From the sequence record MZ444140.1: a DNA stretch of 64,000 nt; one strand, given 5' to 3'. This document shows positions 5,807 through 64,000 of this stretch, in pieces; positions within the stretch are counted from its first letter, which is position 1; each line of letters begins with the position of its first letter. A model generated the notes under the pieces. That model saw only the letters and a list, made by a program, of their open reading frames with translations. It did no database searches and had not been told where the DNA came from. The position numbers were made by a program, and so were the translations under genes.

Positions 5807-7687
5807 TTAGTACCAGGTACCCGGTGCGTTATAGGAAGGAGCGCCGTAAGTTTGACCCATGCTGCCAGCCATACCAACTTGTGCACTACCAGAAACAGCC
5901 ATGTTACCCATACCGGTGTAACCAGCGAAGCGCTGTTGACCGAAGTTGGTAATTAGGTTTTCCATGGTTACAGTTACACCAGCTGCTGCTGCTGCGGCAT
6001 CCATTGCGGTGATGAATTTCGGGTTAAAGGTTAGACGACGAGCACGACCAGTATAGGTAACGTTACCTAGGTACATCTTGTCGAAGCCTTTACTGTTATT
6101 CATACGACGCACAATGTGGTCATTACCTACCTGAGTAGCATACCAGGTCTTCCACTCTTGGTCATTACCTTCAGACATGTTCATGGCACCTAGAACGTCG
6201 AGATCACGACGGTCGCTTAGTTCACCATGCTCATCAGTGTAGTGACCGAGGTCTACTTCATGATGGTTGTCAAAGATAATCGGACCAGCTTCAGCTAGAT
6301 TATAGAACTGACGGAAATCAGTGCCGTATAGGTTAGTTAGAGCTTGGAAGATCAGACTAACTGCACGAGCTTGGTTTACGCCACCAGCTGCATCTAGGAC
6401 GACTTGCTCAATAGCTGAGTTGTCGCCCATTGGATCGATATCGATCTGGAATGCAGGGTTCTGGTTAACCATCTTGTTCATTAGCATTACGAAGTTGCTG
6501 TCGTCTGCCATGAATGCTTCGGTGCGAGTTTCAATCGCTTTACCTAGCTCTGAGTAATAACCAAGTGCACCAATATCACGCATCTTGCTAGTAGCGATCT
6601 TCGGCATTAGGGTACGAGCCCATGCCTGGGATGCAGTTGCACGATACGCATTACCGAGTGCGAACAGCCACATTTCTAGAGTCCATGCTTGGATCCAGGA
6701 CGCCTTACGAACGTCAGTAATAACGATGTAAGGAGTGAACTGCGGAGGTAGAACTGCACCAGGTAGAGTTACGCCAAACATGCCTTGTTGCTGGCCAGTG
6801 GTCGGAGTCCAATGTAGATCTACGAATAGACTAACTTGGTTTAGCTGGCTATCGGTATCATAGAACTCGTTCTCAGGTACGTTGGTTTTCTTACCACGGC
6901 TAGTGGAGATGACCAGGTCAGAACGGATCGGATTACCACAGCTATCTTTAACCGGAATACCATTGTAGTCTAGATTGCAGGTAAGCTGTTCGTTTTCTGC
7001 TTTGATGTGGGTCGCAATAGAGAACGGAGTCTCATTGTTACGACGCGCAATAGCATCTTCACAGATATTAACGGATTCAACTAGTAGGTTCTTAACAGCT
7101 AGTTCATCTTTGAAGTCGAAGTCAGCATACACTGCACGGGGACCGGCAGATAGTACTTCTAGACCAGGGATGTTGTAACGGTTCCGTAGGAACTCGCCGA
7201 TCTTGCTCCAGTATTGAGCAGTGAATACATCACGCGGTAGTACCTTCTCTTCAATGATGTCATCAGTTAGACCATTGTTGATTTTGTGGGTACGGGGACG
7301 GATGCGAGTACCAGGTAGGTTATCGAGTACTAGAGTACGAACGAATGCCTTCATGGAACCATTGATATCTTTAGCTAGTTTAACAATGAGTAGACCAGCC
7401 ATACCCACTTGTTGTGCATCGCGATCGAAACGATGGATATCGAAGTCATCAGGTAGGTCCTGATGGCGGATTGCTTCTTCTTTTACTTTAGTGAATACTT
7501 GTAGGGCATCTGCTGAACGAGCATCAGAGCCATCTAGCCGACCAGAGCGACGCATTAGATGGTTAATGCCAGTAGTGGACCCAGGTGCGCCAGCCGGACG
7601 TTGAGCTTGACGTTGTGCAGTGGGTTGCGGAGCCGGAGCGGTAGCTTGAGTTTGAACGGTGCCGATTTCGTTTTCGTTAACAGCCAT
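5807..7687 (-). CDS. chmA: Chimallin, major phage nuclear shell protein (phiKZ gp54 equivalent)
   Basis: 626 aa; N-terminus [14 protein letters not shown] recognised; low-complexity termini; high-expression codon bias; directly upstream of the nvRNAP beta-prime gene as in phiKZ-like phages. Confidence 0.9.
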
Positions 7688-7759
7688 TTTAAATACCTTT
7701 ACGATTATGGTTTCTTGATCAAGAAGAACCTAAGTACTTAGTATACTAGATTCAATTTA

Positions 7760-7783
7760 GTAATATAAATCTCAAATTTTTTT
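7760..7783 (-). promoter_or_regulatory. TATATTAC-type phage promoter for chimallin
   Basis: AAAAAAATTTGAGATTTATATTAC on the minus strand, 73 nt upstream of the ATG; TATATTAC is the published phiKZ early-promoter core. Confidence 0.7.
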
Positions 7784-7840
7784 CATTACAACATAGACGC
7801 TATAATCTGCTATCAGCAGATCGTAACGAACACTATGTTC

Positions 7841-7875
7841 ACTACATATTATTACAATCTGAGTATTATTTATTT
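7841..7875 (-). repeat. 35-bp element identical (inverted) to 63847-63881
   Basis: Reverse complement AAATAAATAATACTCAGATTGTAATAATATGTAGT matches 63847-63881 exactly. Confidence 0.9.
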
Positions 7876-7998
7876 TTCATCTTACAATTTCCATATCTTC
7901 TTTTTTGAGTTTATGGGTATAAAGTTTGAATCCAGAAACTAATTTACGTCAGTCCTGTATTAAATAATAACTATCAGTATTTTTATAAAATGCAGTTA

Positions 7999-8364
7999 TC
8001 ATTTACTTCGCATATACTTACGAACTGTTCCAAAAAGAGAATGATACAGTTTGTATAGTTTACTAACTGGATCAACTTTATTATTATCAGTTGTATCAAA
8101 TTTAGCAATAAATGGTGAATGTGCCGAAGCAGATGTTTCATTTACTTTAACTACACTACCAAATCGATATGCGACTAATACCTTTATTAATTCCTCATGG
8201 AGTTTAGTAGCAGTTGCTAATGGATTGGGATCATTAGGATCTATCTTAATCCTACGCTCGACATTGAAAAAGTTTACTACAATTTCTTTGCTAGTCATGT
8301 ATACAGTAAGATCTTTGTTATTACCTAAATATAGTGGCGGATCTTCAACATTATTTTTAGCCAT
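7999..8364 (-). CDS. Hypothetical protein (gp53 position)
   Basis: 121-aa ORF with GGA RBS and upstream promoter motif at 8406-8430. Confidence 0.7.
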   Translation of the reverse strand: MAKNNVEDPPLYLGNNKDLTVYMTSKEIVVNFFNVERRIKIDPNDPNPLATATKLHEELIKVLVAYRFGSVVKVNETSASAHSPFIAKFDTTDNNKVDPVSKLYKLYHSLFGTVRKYMRSK

Positions 8365-18480: not shown

Positions 18481-18786
18481 TCAATTAATACTGTTGAGAA
18501 TCTTTTTGATGAGATCACCAGGTGCAATACCAATACCTGAACAATACCGTCTAAAGTTATTACACGGTTGACATGCTTTCTTTTCAACGATATTTAATTC
18601 AAAGCAAATATTGCCACGTGAATCTAGAATGGATATAAATGCTTTGTTACCTGTTACGCGATATGTCTTACCGAATACAACAGTTGTTTTATATGCAAGG
18701 CTATTCATGATTATTCCTTTAACATGGATTATTATCATGTTTGTAATATAGCCTTTAAATGTATTTAAATATTTATTAAACCCCAT
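18481..18786 (-). CDS. Hypothetical protein (start possibly at MNSLAYK)
   Basis: 101-aa frame with CQPC/C cluster. Confidence 0.55.
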   Translation of the reverse strand: MGFNKYLNTFKGYITNMIIIHVKGIIMNSLAYKTTVVFGKTYRVTGNKAFISILDSRGNICFELNIVEKKACQPCNNFRRYCSGIGIAPGDLIKKILNSIN

Positions 18787-45379: not shown

Positions 45380-45826
45380 CTACTGATTTACACGTTTTTG
45401 GTATCCCACCATGTAACTTTTATTGAGGTAGCCCTTGATATTACAATCTACCTCCAGTTCATCTGCTGGGAAACCACTACGGATACGTCTACGAATAGCC
45501 AGTAAGATGGATTCAGATTCTTCTGGATCGAACAGATCTACGCCAAAGGTAGTCCAACTATTACCTATTTTGTGCTGATATTCCAGACGTACGGTAGTGC
45601 CATCCGGTGCGATGAACCAACGTTCGTACTCAGATACGACCATATGACAACCACACTGCCACAAAGTACCTAGTGGATCTTTAGAAGCAAGGATACGTTT
45701 GGTATCATTCTCATCTTGCGATTTCGAATCAGGGCTGGAACAGAGATGGGATAGTAGAAACAGAAGCGATGCTTCGGTGCTATGAGTACACAGCATTGCG
45801 CGGGTGAGGTTTGCATTGATGATCAT
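45380..45826 (-). CDS. Hypothetical protein
   Basis: 148 aa with AAGGA RBS. Confidence 0.7.
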   Translation of the reverse strand: MIINANLTRAMLCTHSTEASLLFLLSHLCSSPDSKSQDENDTKRILASKDPLGTLWQCGCHMVVSEYERWFIAPDGTTVRLEYQHKIGNSWTTFGVDLFDPEESESILLAIRRRIRSGFPADELEVDCNIKGYLNKSYMVGYQKRVNQ

Positions 45827-49519: not shown

Positions 49520-49560
49520 GGTTTGATTCCTTTTTACTAATTTAATAGGTTTAATTACAC

Positions 49561-49592
49561 TTTTGTAATATACTGTTTAAATAGGTTTGAAT
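49561..49592 (-). promoter_or_regulatory. Early (virion RNAP) promoter
   Basis: TTCAAACCTATTTAAACAGTATATTACAAAA; contains the published TTTAA and TATATTAC elements. Confidence 0.8.
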
Positions 49593-49599
49593 GTATTTT

Positions 49600-50993: not shown

Positions 50994-51036
50994 GGTATAG
51001 ATTCCTTTTTACATTAATTAAAGGTTTAATATCAAG

Positions 51037-51068
51037 TTTGTAATATACGCTTTAAAATGGTTTGAATG
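51037..51068 (-). promoter_or_regulatory. Early promoter
   Basis: TTCAAACCATTTTAAAGCGTATATTACAAA. Confidence 0.8.
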
Positions 51069-51087
51069 TATTATCAGTAGGGAAGGG

Positions 51088-51492: not shown

Positions 51493-51540
51493 GGACTGTA
51501 CTCTCCAATAATAAATAGAATAATCTATATTTAATTACAC

Positions 51541-51572
51541 TTTTGTAATATACCCTTTAAATAGGTTTGAAT
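51541..51572 (-). promoter_or_regulatory. Early promoter
   Basis: TTCAAACCTATTTAAAGGGTATATTACAAAA. Confidence 0.8.
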
Positions 51573-51609
51573 ACATGACATAAAGCCTTCCCATTAGGGA
51601 AGGCTATTA

Positions 51610-59855: not shown

Positions 59856-59894
59856 CGCAATACACTCATCGATGTTGAAAAATAATTTACTGAG

Positions 59895-60056
59895 TATGTA
59901 ATGATATGTAGAAATGATCCCTCCCCCTCGTTTCTACATTAGTCATAATAGATCGGAGCCAGTTCCCCTTCCAGCTGGCTTCAAGAGAGTAAAACTCTCT
60001 ACTGGGCATTCATGACGATATATTGCCTCCCTTCGGGGAGGCTTTATATTTTTTTT
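59895..60056 (+). ncRNA. Candidate small RNA with three hairpins and a terminator
   Basis: TATGTA start motif; stems 59906-14/59931-39, 59955-62/59975-82, 59984-90/59994-60000; UUCG terminator 60025-60056. Confidence 0.5.
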
Positions 60057-60557: not shown

Positions 60558-60633
60558 TACTAAAATAAGTTAAGTAATTAATAGATGTTGTAATAAAATA
60601 CCTAGCATTACATGTTATGTATTGAAGCACAAT

Positions 60634-60718
60634 GCCCGAATGGTGAAATTGGTAAACACAGAAGACTTAAAATCTTCCGACTACGGTCTTGTCGGTTCGA
60701 ATCCGACTTCGGGCACCA
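60634..60718 (+). tRNA. tRNA-Leu (UAA)
   Basis: Cloverleaf with long variable arm; anticodon loop CTTAAAA; GTTCGAATC; encoded CCA. Confidence 0.95.
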
Positions 60719-60727
60719 ATTTAAATA

Positions 60728-60803
60728 CGGAGTGTAGCGCAGTTGGTAGCGCACCTGCTTTGGGAGCAGGATGTCGGGAGTTCGAGTCTCCCCACTCCGA
60801 CCA
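60728..60803 (+). tRNA. tRNA-Pro (UGG)
   Basis: 76 nt; CCTGC-TTTGGGA-GCAGG anticodon arm; encoded CCA. Confidence 0.95.
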
Positions 60804-60811
60804 TTTAAATA

Positions 60812-60840
60812 TAAAACCCCTCTGCCATGGAGGGGTTTTA
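60812..60840 (+). terminator. Terminator after the tRNA pair
   Basis: TAAAACCCCTC/GAGGGGTTTTA. Confidence 0.7.
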
Positions 60841-60861
60841 TATTGAATTGAGATAATAGGC

Positions 60862-61083
60862 ATGGATATTGCAACAATGTTTGTTTTAGCGATTCATGTA
60901 GGGTTGTTTGGAATTACATCCATAGAAGAATCGACTATCCAATTTGAAAATAAAGCACAGTGTATTTCGCGTCTAGATATTTTAGAAAACAAGTACCATG
61001 GATACGAGGTACTACGAACAGAGAATACGTTGAAAGTTACTAATCCTGACGAGTATTCTATTTTTATTTTCAAATGCCTTTAA
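60862..61083 (+). CDS. Small protein with a hydrophobic N-terminus
   Basis: 73 aa; signal/TM segment followed by F.....QC motif. Confidence 0.55.
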   Translation: MDIATMFVLAIHVGLFGITSIEESTIQFENKAQCISRLDILENKYHGYEVLRTENTLKVTNPDEYSIFIFKCL

Positions 61084-61179
61084 GAGAAAATTATAGAACA
61101 CCAAGAACAAAAAGCGCTACTAAAAGAACCATTGCAGAAACTTTAAAATCTTACGTTTAGCCCCCGCTTATGTAATGGA

Positions 61180-61380
61180 GTGATAGCTCCTGATTGGATT
61201 CACCTGACCGATGAAGTAACCTTATTCCCAAACGGATTAGATATTATAATCAATGATATTACACGTTGTATCAAATGGGAACTTATCGAGGAGAATGTAA
61301 GTAATATTACTTATGTTGAAGCCATGTTCTTTAATAAAAGTCTTAAAGCAGTTAGGGCATATCTCAAACATACGGAGTAA
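61180..61380 (+). CDS. Small hypothetical protein
   Basis: 66 aa; GTG start with GGAG RBS. Confidence 0.55.
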   Translation: MIAPDWIHLTDEVTLFPNGLDIIINDITRCIKWELIEENVSNITYVEAMFFNKSLKAVRAYLKHTE

Positions 61381-61382
61381 AT

Positions 61383-61730
61383 ATGAACCATCTAACACAA
61401 ACACAGAACGCCGTATATTTCACATTTGTTAGTCCTGAGTTTATGAAACTAACTCTTGTTGAATCATTTGTAGCTATCCACAAGAAACATCCAGAAGTAA
61501 AGCACTGTGTTAAGAAAAAGATTAGTGCTAATGAAACGCAGTTTATCTTTATCTTCAAAGATGGGACTGATAATTTAATCGTCACCCGTAAGACTGAGCC
61601 CTGTCCTGAACTGGATAGTCCAGTAGGTGATATAATTAAGTTGTCTGGTGAAGAACTTAAAAATATTCTCACTAAACATGGTCGCCCTAGTGACAGTAAC
61701 TATTTTAAGCATTGGACAGACCGTCCATGA
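61383..61730 (+). CDS. Hypothetical protein
   Basis: 115 aa with GGAG RBS. Confidence 0.65.
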   Translation: MNHLTQTQNAVYFTFVSPEFMKLTLVESFVAIHKKHPEVKHCVKKKISANETQFIFIFKDGTDNLIVTRKTEPCPELDSPVGDIIKLSGEELKNILTKHGRPSDSNYFKHWTDRP

Positions 61731-61774
61731 TATTATAAAATCCCTATGTATGCCAATATGTAGGTAATGAATTA

Positions 61775-61851
61775 GGGCCTATAGCTCAGTTGGTTAGAGC
61801 AGGCGACTCATAATCGCTTGGTCGCAGGTTCAAGTCCTGCTGGGCCCACCA
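61775..61851 (+). tRNA. tRNA with CAU anticodon, most likely tRNA-Ile2 (lysidine) rather than Met
   Basis: 77 nt; GGCGACTCATAATCGCTTGGTCGC as in E. coli ileX; C4-G69 and C5-G68 pairs. Confidence 0.85.
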
Positions 61852-61860
61852 AATTAATAA

Positions 61861-61899
61861 AGCATAATGCCTTCCCTATTTAAGGGGAGGCATTATGCT
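61861..61899 (+). terminator. Long palindrome after the tRNA
   Basis: AGCATAATGCCT/AGGCATTATGCT perfect 12-bp outer stem. Confidence 0.7.
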
Positions 61900-61975
61900 G
61901 TCTACGATAATAAAATAAATATCTGAACCGCAAAGGTTATCTTATGACTTAACTGTATTACTTGAGAATATACTC

Positions 61976-62983
61976 ATGTTTGAATTACTATTATCACCAG
62001 ATATAGGCGAAGAGTTACCCTTGGTTGGATTTAATGAAATTATTAAATTAGGTGATCTGCCTGTGGCACTAGCTGGTACAATGTCATATGTGGATGGAAA
62101 TACACTGTATGTTGGATCTGGTCATCATACTGAAGGGCAAACAGCTGCAACTGTGTTCAGACGTTTTACCATATCGCCATTTGCCGATATAGGTGCAACT
62201 GCTTCTGGAACATTCTTACCAGGGGTATCTTTAGGATTTGGGACATTACATAAGAATAACTTTATTGTTTATGGCGGTATTACTGGATGGAACTCGGCTG
62301 GTAATGGTGGTACGGGAACATCTAACTTTATACAACATTTTGATATAGCTACAGGCAATAGGGTTGAGCGATATAGTGGCCCCGTACCACTTTGGGGCAC
62401 AGCCTCCGCATCAGATGGTAATGATCTTATTCTATGCGTTAACCCAATTGGCGTAAACACAATGCGATTAAAACCATCAAGTAAGTCTTGGCTTAGCGGG
62501 CAAGACTACGCAGGTGGTGCTCGTTCAGGTCAACAGTTATTCTTTTATAATGGTTACTTTTACCATTTTGGTGGTTGGGATAATACAAAGAACATACCTA
62601 ATCTTGAAGTTTATCGATATAATGCAACTACCTTAATATGGGAGCAAACACCTTGGATGATTATACCTGCTGATAAAGGAACAATCTGGCAAGGTAATGG
62701 TTATGTAGATGGTGACTATTTTAATTACCTTAACGCTGTTAATGTCGGCGGTGTAACTAAAATGTTTGCACAACGTTTTAATATTAGGCGCCGGAAATGG
62801 GCTGAACCATTTGAACTAGGTATCGGATTCCTCAATATTTCATCTATAGCTAAAGGTCCGGATAATAGCATGATCATTGTAGGTGGATCTAAAATGCCAG
62901 TTGGTGGTGGAGCATACATGTTGAAAAGCCAATTGTTATCAGGTATCTATCAGGTAAAACTAGCACCATTAATCATTGATTAA
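61976..62983 (+). CDS. Kelch-repeat beta-propeller protein, likely virion/tail-associated
   Basis: LYVGSG, IVYGG, YHFGG and IIVGG repeats; MFELLLS N-terminus. Confidence 0.75.
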   Translation: MFELLLSPDIGEELPLVGFNEIIKLGDLPVALAGTMSYVDGNTLYVGSGHHTEGQTAATVFRRFTISPFADIGATASGTFLPGVSLGFGTLHKNNFIVYGGITGWNSAGNGGTGTSNFIQHFDIATGNRVERYSGPVPLWGTASASDGNDLILCVNPIGVNTMRLKPSSKSWLSGQDYAGGARSGQQLFFYNGYFYHFGGWDNTKNIPNLEVYRYNATTLIWEQTPWMIIPADKGTIWQGNGYVDGDYFNYLNAVNVGGVTKMFAQRFNIRRRKWAEPFELGIGFLNISSIAKGPDNSMIIVGGSKMPVGGGAYMLKSQLLSGIYQVKLAPLIID

Positions 62984-63032
62984 AATAATAATATTTATAA
63001 CTATTTAGATAATTATACTGGCACGATGATAT

Positions 63033-63141
63033 TATGTAAGAGTACTATACTAAAGTATTCTTAAATCTATCCACTAAACACACTCGGTGGTAGAACTTAT
63101 TATAGAGTGTGTCTAAATGCCAGGGGTTTGCCACCCCTGGC
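63033..63141 (+). ncRNA. Candidate pseudoknot-containing small RNA
   Basis: H-type pseudoknot 63066-63112 plus an 8-bp GC hairpin 63119-63141. Confidence 0.5.
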
Positions 63142-63268
63142 TATATTCATTGTTACTATTATAAATTCATTTATAGATGAGAAAAGGTTTTATCACCTTT
63201 TCAAAATCGGCATTTGATTCTAGTTAAAAAAACTGAATCTATGCTACATTGTAATAAAGGAGTCTATT

Positions 63269-63781
63269 ATGACTAACTCTAATCCGTTTGTAAGAACTAT
63301 TGTAAAGTACCAAGATATCCTAGATGCTTTAATTCAAAAAACGAATGAGAACTGGGTTAATTATCGATCTAATTCTATTGGCCATATTGTTATTCGTGAA
63401 TACAGGACTGTTGGATTATTTGTAGGTCGGCAATGTGGTAGTACAACTGCATTGATTGAGTTTGCTAATCGTCATCCTGGCGAATGTCTAGCTGTATTTG
63501 TAGAAGATAAAATTAAACAGGCTGTACTGGCTAAGTTCCAGAATGCTAAAGATAATATTGTTTCTTGTTTAATTACACACCAACTCCGTAAATATATTCA
63601 TCAACCTGAAGAATCATCTATTCAAAAAGATATTAAAGAAGAATTAATATCGTCTGTAAAATATATTCTTGTTGACAATGCCTCATTTAATCTGAACCTA
63701 CGCGGTATCACTGATAAAGAATTTAACCAGTGGGTTGCAGATACTTTTGGTACAGAGGTAATGGTGGTTCGTTTTAGTTAG
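63269..63781 (+). CDS. Small P-loop NTPase-fold-like protein with a degenerate Walker A
   Basis: VGRQCGSTT and YILVDNA. Confidence 0.55.
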   Translation: MTNSNPFVRTIVKYQDILDALIQKTNENWVNYRSNSIGHIVIREYRTVGLFVGRQCGSTTALIEFANRHPGECLAVFVEDKIKQAVLAKFQNAKDNIVSCLITHQLRKYIHQPEESSIQKDIKEELISSVKYILVDNASFNLNLRGITDKEFNQWVADTFGTEVMVVRFS

Positions 63782-63846
63782 AATTAGTAACTTTGATAGT
63801 TTCTAATAAGATTAACTACACGTTATTTACATAATGTCATAACAAG

Positions 63847-63881
63847 AAATAAATAATACTCAGATTGTAATAATATGTAGT
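63847..63881 (+). repeat. 35-bp element identical (inverted) to 7841-7875; probable promoter for tRNA-Asn
   Basis: AAATAAATAATACTCAGATTGTAATAATATGTAGT, containing a TATG late-type start motif. Confidence 0.85.

Positions 63882-63942: not shown

Positions 63943-64000
<58 letters not shown>

Follow-up and report, generated by a model that had tools for sequence, protein, structure and literature searches.

The stretch of DNA analysed here, referred to throughout as the window, comprises 64,000 nucleotides of sequence record MZ444140.1. The region was 99–100% identical to PA7, PA02, SL2, phiKZ and approximately 45 other Pseudomonas phiKZ-like phages, and its source is, as judged from these identities, a phiKZ-like (PA7-like) Pseudomonas jumbo phage. 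Two identical 35-bp elements in inverted orientation, termed copy A and copy B, were found upstream of the following genes:

7841–7875, minus strand: copy A, ortholog of the phiKZ middle promoter P027, with TACT at 7862–7865, TATG at 7845–7848 and the transcription start site (TSS) on the G at 7845
5807–7687, minus strand: chmA, encoding chimallin, the nuclear shell protein (PHIKZ054 ortholog), served by copy A; full-length PF25677 match (E=0) and phiKZ annotation
63847–63881, plus strand: copy B, ortholog of the phiKZ middle promoter P137, with the TSS on the G at 63877, followed by a 66-nt leader and then tRNA-Asn
63943–64000, plus strand: 5′ part of tRNA-Asn (GTT), truncated at the end of the window; first of the genes that copy B serves; called by ARAGORN at the identical PA7 locus

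Each copy is directed at its downstream gene, chmA for copy A and tRNA-Asn for copy B, as a previous sequence-only reading had described. The chimallin ATG (7687) lies 154 nt past the end of copy A. The tRNA-Asn start at 63943, 62 nt past the end of copy B, was inferred from the identical PA7 locus, where ARAGORN identified a 76-nt tRNA-Asn (L001 1597–1672) that the window sequence matches; ARAGORN gave no tRNA-Asn call in the window itself, where the gene runs off the end.

The exact 35-bp inverted repeat reported in that reading was correct: the 35-mer was present exactly twice in the window, at 7841–7875 (−) and 63847–63881 (+), with no mismatches, and no third copy was found in the window at up to three mismatches. 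The chance expectation for such matches, estimated from 100 shuffles, was 0. The pair is both the longest inverted repeat and the longest exact repeat in the window, the next-longest exact repeats being 21–22-nt terminator hairpin stems. When the two copies were compared in register with 120 nt of flank, identity was perfect across the 35 nt and fell to background from the first outer base at both edges. The suggested search for further genomic copies was carried out in PA7 (the nearest record) and phiKZ, which stood in for the window's own assembly, and the 35-mer occurred exactly twice in each whole genome. In phiKZ, one copy (45460–45494, plus strand) is located 154 nt before the PHIKZ054 ATG, and the other (269752–269786, minus strand) is located between PHIKZ297 and the tRNA-Asn gene t02.

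The 35-mer consists of an A-rich tract, TACT (positions 11–14), 13 nt that include TGTAAT, TATG (positions 28–31) and then TAGT. We compared this layout with the TSS tables in the supplement of Putzeys et al. 2024 (bioRxiv version of PMC10914365; Table S3), which were obtained by ONT-cappable-seq in phiKZ rather than in the phage studied here. Two listed phiKZ promoters correspond to the two copies: P027 (TSS 45490, plus strand), a ‘middle promoter’ for which no earlier validation is marked, and P137 (TSS 269756, minus strand), a ‘middle promoter’ also marked as detected by the dRNA-seq of Wicke et al. (2021) (Putzeys et al. 2024, PMC10914365). Coordinate mapping from phiKZ to the window placed TSS 45490 at 7845 and TSS 269756 at 63877, both at repeat position 31, and the printed 50-nt upstream strings of P027 and P137 both terminate in the TATG of the repeat. 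Both phiKZ starts thus fall on the G of the TATG that the sequence-only reading had singled out, and the TSS mapping it had proposed was already available, in phiKZ, for both copies in the tabulated rows. Relative to the mapped start, the 35-mer spans −30 to +5, and AATAATACT at repeat positions 6–14 occupies −25 to −17. Only the first five bases are common to the two transcripts, indicating that the identity of the 35-mer is a feature of the DNA (promoter) rather than of the RNA. In the listed phiKZ transcription units, P027 leads to PHIKZ054, and P137 leads to t02 and PHIKZ296, with a longer version that includes five more genes (Putzeys et al. 2024, PMC10914365). Phage phiKZ and the window thus share the same 35 nt, the same flanking genes, the start on the G of TATG and the middle classification; they differ downstream of copy B, where a rearranged tRNA and the HNH gene 296 are found in phiKZ, and a plain 76-nt tRNA-Asn and a hairpin terminator in the closest relative of the window. 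The identity of P027 and P137 is not mentioned in the main texts of the two mapping papers (Putzeys, Wicke).

A start at G34, which quoted ‘−22/−24’ spacings had suggested, was dropped in favour of G31 on the basis of the published TSSs, a contig break at 7845 and the boundary of a small RNA described below; with the ‘−22’ TACT spacing of Wicke, the start would lie 3 nt downstream of the ONT value.

The middle promoters of phiKZ have been described as an AAanTTACc box centred near −24, in some cases with a correctly placed TATG (+1) (Yakunina 2015), and as TACT after an A-rich repeat (Wicke et al. 2020). Both features were found in the 35-mer, in which the A-rich tract and then TACT lie approximately 17–25 nt ahead of the start. 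Mapped 5′ ends are provided by the P027 and P137 entries in the tabulated rows, with which the contig break at 7845 agrees for copy A and, for copy B, a depth jump only. The ‘middle’ label is itself a motif-based assignment in the literature, and the RNA contigs used here carry no time resolution. The earlier reading had labelled TATG as a late-start motif; TATG is indeed present with the start on its G, but the middle box is present too, and the assignment in the literature is middle (A-rich/TACT box plus TATG) rather than plain late (TATG only). In vitro, the middle box lowers late-type transcription by the non-virion RNA polymerase (nvRNAP), and purified nvRNAP transcribes late but not middle promoters, for which a recruiting DNA-binding protein has been proposed (Yakunina 2015). 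An early (virion RNAP) box, of the AT-rich TATATTAC type centred near −10, was absent from the 35-mer; such a box lies 80 nt downstream, at 7760–7768.

Both copies are promoters with the start on the G of TATG in phiKZ, where they are published as middle class, and the 35-bp repeat is very probably one complete phiKZ-type middle promoter present twice. As in the phiKZ middle class (Ceyssens 2014; Yakunina 2015; Wicke 2020), which is used for tRNA units and middle genes, an A-rich/TAC(T/C) box is combined with TATG at the start; members of this class normally share the two short boxes only, whereas P027 and P137 share all 35 positions. A tRNA gene (tRNA-Leu) is likewise under a middle promoter in the chimallivirus 201phi2-1 (PMC11512511), a phage of another genus for which no duplication onto the shell gene is reported in that work. 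The middle promoters of T4, in which a MotA box at −30 and a −10 element are used by the host RNAP with MotA/AsiA, offer an analogy and not a class to which the repeat belongs: they too are two-part, with an upstream box that confers the temporal class, but phiKZ uses its own multisubunit RNAPs.

We also searched for related promoters. The pattern TACY-N13-TATGTA had 12 matches in phiKZ, compared with 1 for a reversed control, and 7 of the 12 were on the tRNA-coding strand at 265.9–273.5 kb, within the 8-kb tRNA region. Six of these seven appeared as middle promoters among the supplement rows consulted (P133, P134, P137, P138, P140 and P141), and the seventh, near 265.94 kb, fits an adjacent ‘middle promoter’ row. 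In the same rows, P134 is followed by tRNA-Thr, P138 by a small RNA and gp297, P140 by tRNA-Asp/Asn and P141 by tRNA-Leu/Pro. The counterparts of this subclass in the window start at 60599 (Leu/Pro), 63016 (small RNA/gp297) and 63857 (Asn). The siblings of the repeat in the window, with the phiKZ promoters and TSSs of the tabulated rows, were:

59878–59912, plus strand: closest sibling, 25 of 35 positions identical, TACT-N13-TATGTAG, before a terminated small RNA upstream of the PHIKZ302 ortholog; phiKZ P144, TSS 274148
60599–60621, plus strand: sibling middle promoter TACC-N13-TATGTA, directly upstream of tRNA-Leu/tRNA-Pro; phiKZ P141, TSS 273454
63016–63036, plus strand: sibling middle promoter TACT-N13-TATG, before the small RNA/gp297 ortholog; phiKZ P138, TSS 270595

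The P027/P137 pair has the spacer word TGTAAT in common with P140 and P144. The small RNA of P138 has a published 5′ boundary (270595) one base past the G of the P138 TATG, which supports the same start rule. Two short terminated RNAs in the window, at 59913–60053 and 63036–63141, begin at sibling TATGs and are the orthologs of phiKZ TU237 and of the re-annotated 270595–270485 small RNA, respectively; TU237 is listed as a 141-nt transcript, with the P144 TSS at 274148 (Putzeys et al. 2024, PMC10914365). Copy A is the outlier in location, being a promoter of the tRNA-region type set before the shell gene.

Further elements were noted in the window. A tRNA at 61775–61851 (anticodon CAT) has ATATGTAGG approximately 15 nt upstream (61740–61775), with no TACY box at the usual spacing, and this site may, from its sequence, be a variant of the same promoter type reduced to the start site. 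The order of the tRNAs in the window is Leu, Pro, Met, Asn; phiKZ differs, with an extra Asp-Asn pair and gp301. Two families of direct repeats, D1 and D2 (18726–18770, 49525–49597, 51000–51072 and 51505–51577), contain GTATATTACAAA on the minus strand, the early promoter box of phiKZ (virion RNAP), in copies that are all oriented as chmA.

Copy A is not the only promoter of chmA. The intergenic region upstream of chmA contains three further features, the phiKZ data being those of the tabulated rows:

7958–7985, minus strand: most upstream chmA promoter, ortholog of the phiKZ middle promoter P026, with an A-rich/TACT box and the TSS mapping to 7958; phiKZ TSS 45377 (Putzeys Table S3)
7752–7768, minus strand: early (virion-RNAP) chmA promoter, ortholog of phiKZ P028, with the TTTATATTAC box at 7760–7768 and the TSS at 7752/7753
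7789–7839, minus strand: nested leader hairpin, a predicted fold of −21.5 kcal/mol (z=−2.7)

In the same table, P028 has its TSS at 45583 (mapping to window position 7752), is classed as early and is marked as detected by Ceyssens and Wicke; P026 is marked as detected by Wicke 2021, whereas P027 lacks that mark (Putzeys et al. 2024, PMC10914365). The 35-mer was considered as the ‘sTSS with middle motif’ that Wicke reported for PHIKZ054 and was rejected for this role, because the table credits P026 (45377), not P027, to Wicke. P54E served as an early template (Yakunina 2015). Independently, in a transposon study, a TSS directly upstream of chmA sustained expression when orf53 was disrupted. Chimallin has three tandem promoters, the middle promoters P026 and P027 (the 35-mer) and the early promoter P028.

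The leader hairpin would be contained only in transcripts begun at P027 or P026. It had been described in the sequence-only reading as a nested hairpin leader behind copy A; the fold is predicted as described there, but it is lineage specific and not kept in PA1C-type relatives, the equivalent PA1C leader folding no better than shuffles (z=−0.7). The hairpin was consequently rejected as a conserved regulatory RNA. In vB_PA32_GUMS, the loop bases 7812–7814 read, on the transcript strand, ATC in place of GAT, the reverse complement (a loop flip).

Four public RNA runs were examined over positions 7300–8300 of the window. The phage-positive runs consist of assembled contigs, from which starts are not directly readable; the raw-read run X24 had 0 phage reads. 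In the ONT cDNA run X13, the unitigs break at 7845|7846 and overlap there by 30 nt, as expected for k=31. Breaks caused by the repeat fall at 7841, 7846, 7870 and 7875, so that the repeat does not account for the one at 7845|7846, and no sequence variant was reported at this position in X13. The X13 depth was 15 upstream of 7845, 25.5 between 7845 and 7753, and 67.5 downstream of 7753. The X13 contig over 7300–7753 runs straight into 25 adapter-like letters, which we take to be the reverse complement of the ONT strand-switch primer. From this adapter join, a cDNA 5′ end lies at 7753, in agreement with the early promoter P028. At copy B, the contig depth in the Illumina run X14 was 8 leading in and 753 leading out, a difference of approximately 90-fold; this jump is consistent with initiation, and tRNA stability could contribute to it. 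No adapter branch was found at repeat position 31 in the ONT contig that passes through the tRNA copy. The repeat had been proposed to be a duplicated strong promoter, and the promoter half of this proposal was borne out at both copies by the mapped phiKZ starts, but there was no sign of special strength in the ONT contigs, where the step at the chmA copy was approximately 10 depth units, compared with approximately 42 at the early promoter. The strength of copy A relative to the neighbouring chmA promoters looks modest.

We next consider the distribution of the two copies among relatives. Both were present in phiKZ, PA7, SL2, GUMS and approximately 30 others; the chimallin copy alone was present in the KTN4 group (KTN4, fnug, OMKO1, T2P, U1B and others); and the tRNA copy alone was present in the PA1C group (PA1C, phiHQ, phiLBG22 and BRkr), the chimallin of which is 49% identical, phiLBG22 having been placed in this group from search matches alone. 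In the PA1C group, phiHQ carries the exact 35-mer and PA1C a 29-nt exact core, whereas BRkr keeps the 27 nt from ACTCAG onward and has its upstream half, including the T of TACT, replaced, with the site still located before tRNA-Asn. In a five-way alignment that included PA1C, phiHQ and BRkr, a 23-nt promoter core before tRNA-Asn was invariant and as conserved as the tRNA body, and the leader between this core and tRNA-Asn could not be aligned across the two lineages. The chimallin upstream region of the PA1C group is homologous to that of the window and keeps the early box, and the 35-mer is replaced there by a related element that is 12 nt shorter, with TGTAATAC and TATGTG. In the 311-nt chmA intergenic region, seven positions were variable among SL2, GUMS, phiKZ and the window, all of them outside the 35-mer; in IMG/VR, the exact core was found in PA7 only. 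Because genomes within the phiKZ species group are 98–100% identical, exactness there weighs little and cannot on its own be taken as a sign of selection; the informative observation is the conservation across lineages. The search of relatives that had been suggested for this element found the 23-nt core conserved in the divergent PA1C lineage.

Compared with PA1C, the proteins encoded at 60600–63800 of the window were 89% (gp298 ortholog) and 94% (gp299 ortholog) identical, in contrast to 49% for chimallin, and on these identities the tRNA/promoter module has evidently passed between two jumbo-phage lineages of P. aeruginosa that are distant from each other. The distribution of the copies suggests that the promoter alone was copied, or patch-converted, between the two sites in the phiKZ lineage. 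Copying may have run in either direction (from the tRNA site to the chmA site or the reverse), as the tRNA module has itself moved between lineages.

Eleven phages (KTN4, fnug, OMKO1, T2P, U1B, U5, phi9_PA9, ANB1, FBPa36, AttikonH10 and Wadjak 1) are without the promoter/tRNA-Asn cassette after a divergent gp297 allele, which has 81–83% DNA identity in these cassette-less phages. The absence was read in the KTN4 sequence (L009 3560–3860), where a terminator and a different gene are found, and was inferred from search matches for the other ten. Judged from these sequences, the cassette is a natural presence/absence polymorphism. The cargo behind copy B also varies. PA7-like phages carry a normal 76-nt tRNA-Asn, whereas in phiKZ and the PA1C group only its 5′ half, up to the anticodon loop, is kept. 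Next come a tRNA-like gene of 87 nt, which has a GTT anticodon and a long variable arm, and after it the gene of an HNH endonuclease (gp296). The loci with the half tRNA and the tRNA-like gene were:

phiKZ: 269539–269679 (L007 3040–3180)
PA1C: L008 3095–3229
locus L013: 2585–2716
locus L014: 2598–2729

From its gene order, this arrangement looks like an endonuclease-associated replacement inside the tRNA gene.

Copy A is the middle one of the three tandem chmA promoters, an arrangement that would allow chimallin synthesis to continue past the early phase of the virion RNAP, and copy B starts a unit led by tRNA-Asn, to which phiKZ adds the HNH gene 296 and small downstream genes. Transcription of chmA and of tRNA-Asn would be co-timed. 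Recognition would presumably be by the phage nvRNAP together with a further specificity factor, the latter being invoked because middle promoters are not transcribed in vitro by purified nvRNAP.

It is possible, although we hold this tentatively, that the full 35 bp is in addition the operator of a dedicated, putative phage DNA-binding specificity factor for middle transcription. An operator of this extent would account for the retention of every base from −30 to +5, when other middle promoters share only approximately 13 positions, and it would agree with the inactivity of nvRNAP alone on middle promoters in vitro and with the recruiting protein proposed to overcome it (Yakunina 2015). The core is also invariant across lineages with diverged flanks, and the closest siblings have TACT-N-AG-NN-TGTAAT-N-ATATGTAG in common. 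However, BRkr keeps the site before tRNA-Asn without the original upstream half, the T of TACT included; identity within the phiKZ group is expected from its low overall divergence; and other mapped middle promoters vary widely in the spacer.

The inverted arrangement of the copies had also led to the proposal that they could mediate a 56-kb inversion, that is, that they form a recombination substrate that flips the intervening segment and yields genome isomers. In principle, a perfect 35-bp inverted repeat would be long enough for phage recombinases, but this reading is very improbable. A 311-nt query containing copy A and both native flanks gave a single uninterrupted match in each of 47 records, and the relative orientation of the copies, approximately 56 kb apart through the genome ends, was the same in all 33 tallied records with both; a second orientation of the segment was not found in these records. 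No joints were reported in the RNA runs over 7300–8300, in which one RNA contig spans the chmA copy with its native flanks, and no recombinase gene lies beside either copy. The proposed inversion was accordingly abandoned. It is equally improbable that one of the copies has no function of its own and was left behind, neutrally, by a recent duplication or an exchange of modules. The mobility of the tRNA module between lineages, seen in its protein identities to PA1C, would fit such an origin, as would the fact that phages of the KTN4 group do without the tRNA copy, and those of the PA1C group without the one at chmA, but primary 5′ ends are mapped at both copies in phiKZ in the tabulated rows. 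That the element serves the host sigma-70 RNA polymerase as a promoter of the extended −10 type (TGTAATAAT) is hardly credible despite the TG-N-AATAAT string within the repeat, given that a consensus scan gave no good −35/−10 pair (the best, 9/12, takes positions 6–11 as the −10 and is misplaced for a start at 31), that the region has no excess of such sites (7 found versus 4.1 expected), that the mapped start at position 31 is too near the TG-N-AATAAT hexamer, and that phiKZ transcription is reported to be independent of the host RNAP.

The reading of the repeat as a duplicated middle promoter is thus supported, but it is already contained in the published P027 and P137 entries, and no new kind of element is involved; the new details are only the exact identity of P027 and P137 and the presence/absence pattern among relatives. 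We would go further only speculatively, and with more doubt than confidence, in proposing that the 35-mer is a near-complete natural binding site of a putative middle-specificity factor, copied as a unit between the tRNA module and the shell gene and tying nucleus growth to tRNA supply. If this were true, the 35-mer would be a ready-made bait for isolating that factor; in any case, an exactly duplicated 35-bp site that is conserved across lineages is a convenient, defined probe for the reader of phiKZ middle promoters. For the biology of these phages, our analysis confirms that three tandem promoters, belonging to two temporal classes, serve chimallin and shows that one of these promoters is letter for letter that of a tRNA unit, so that the shell protein and the tRNA supply share a transcriptional signal.
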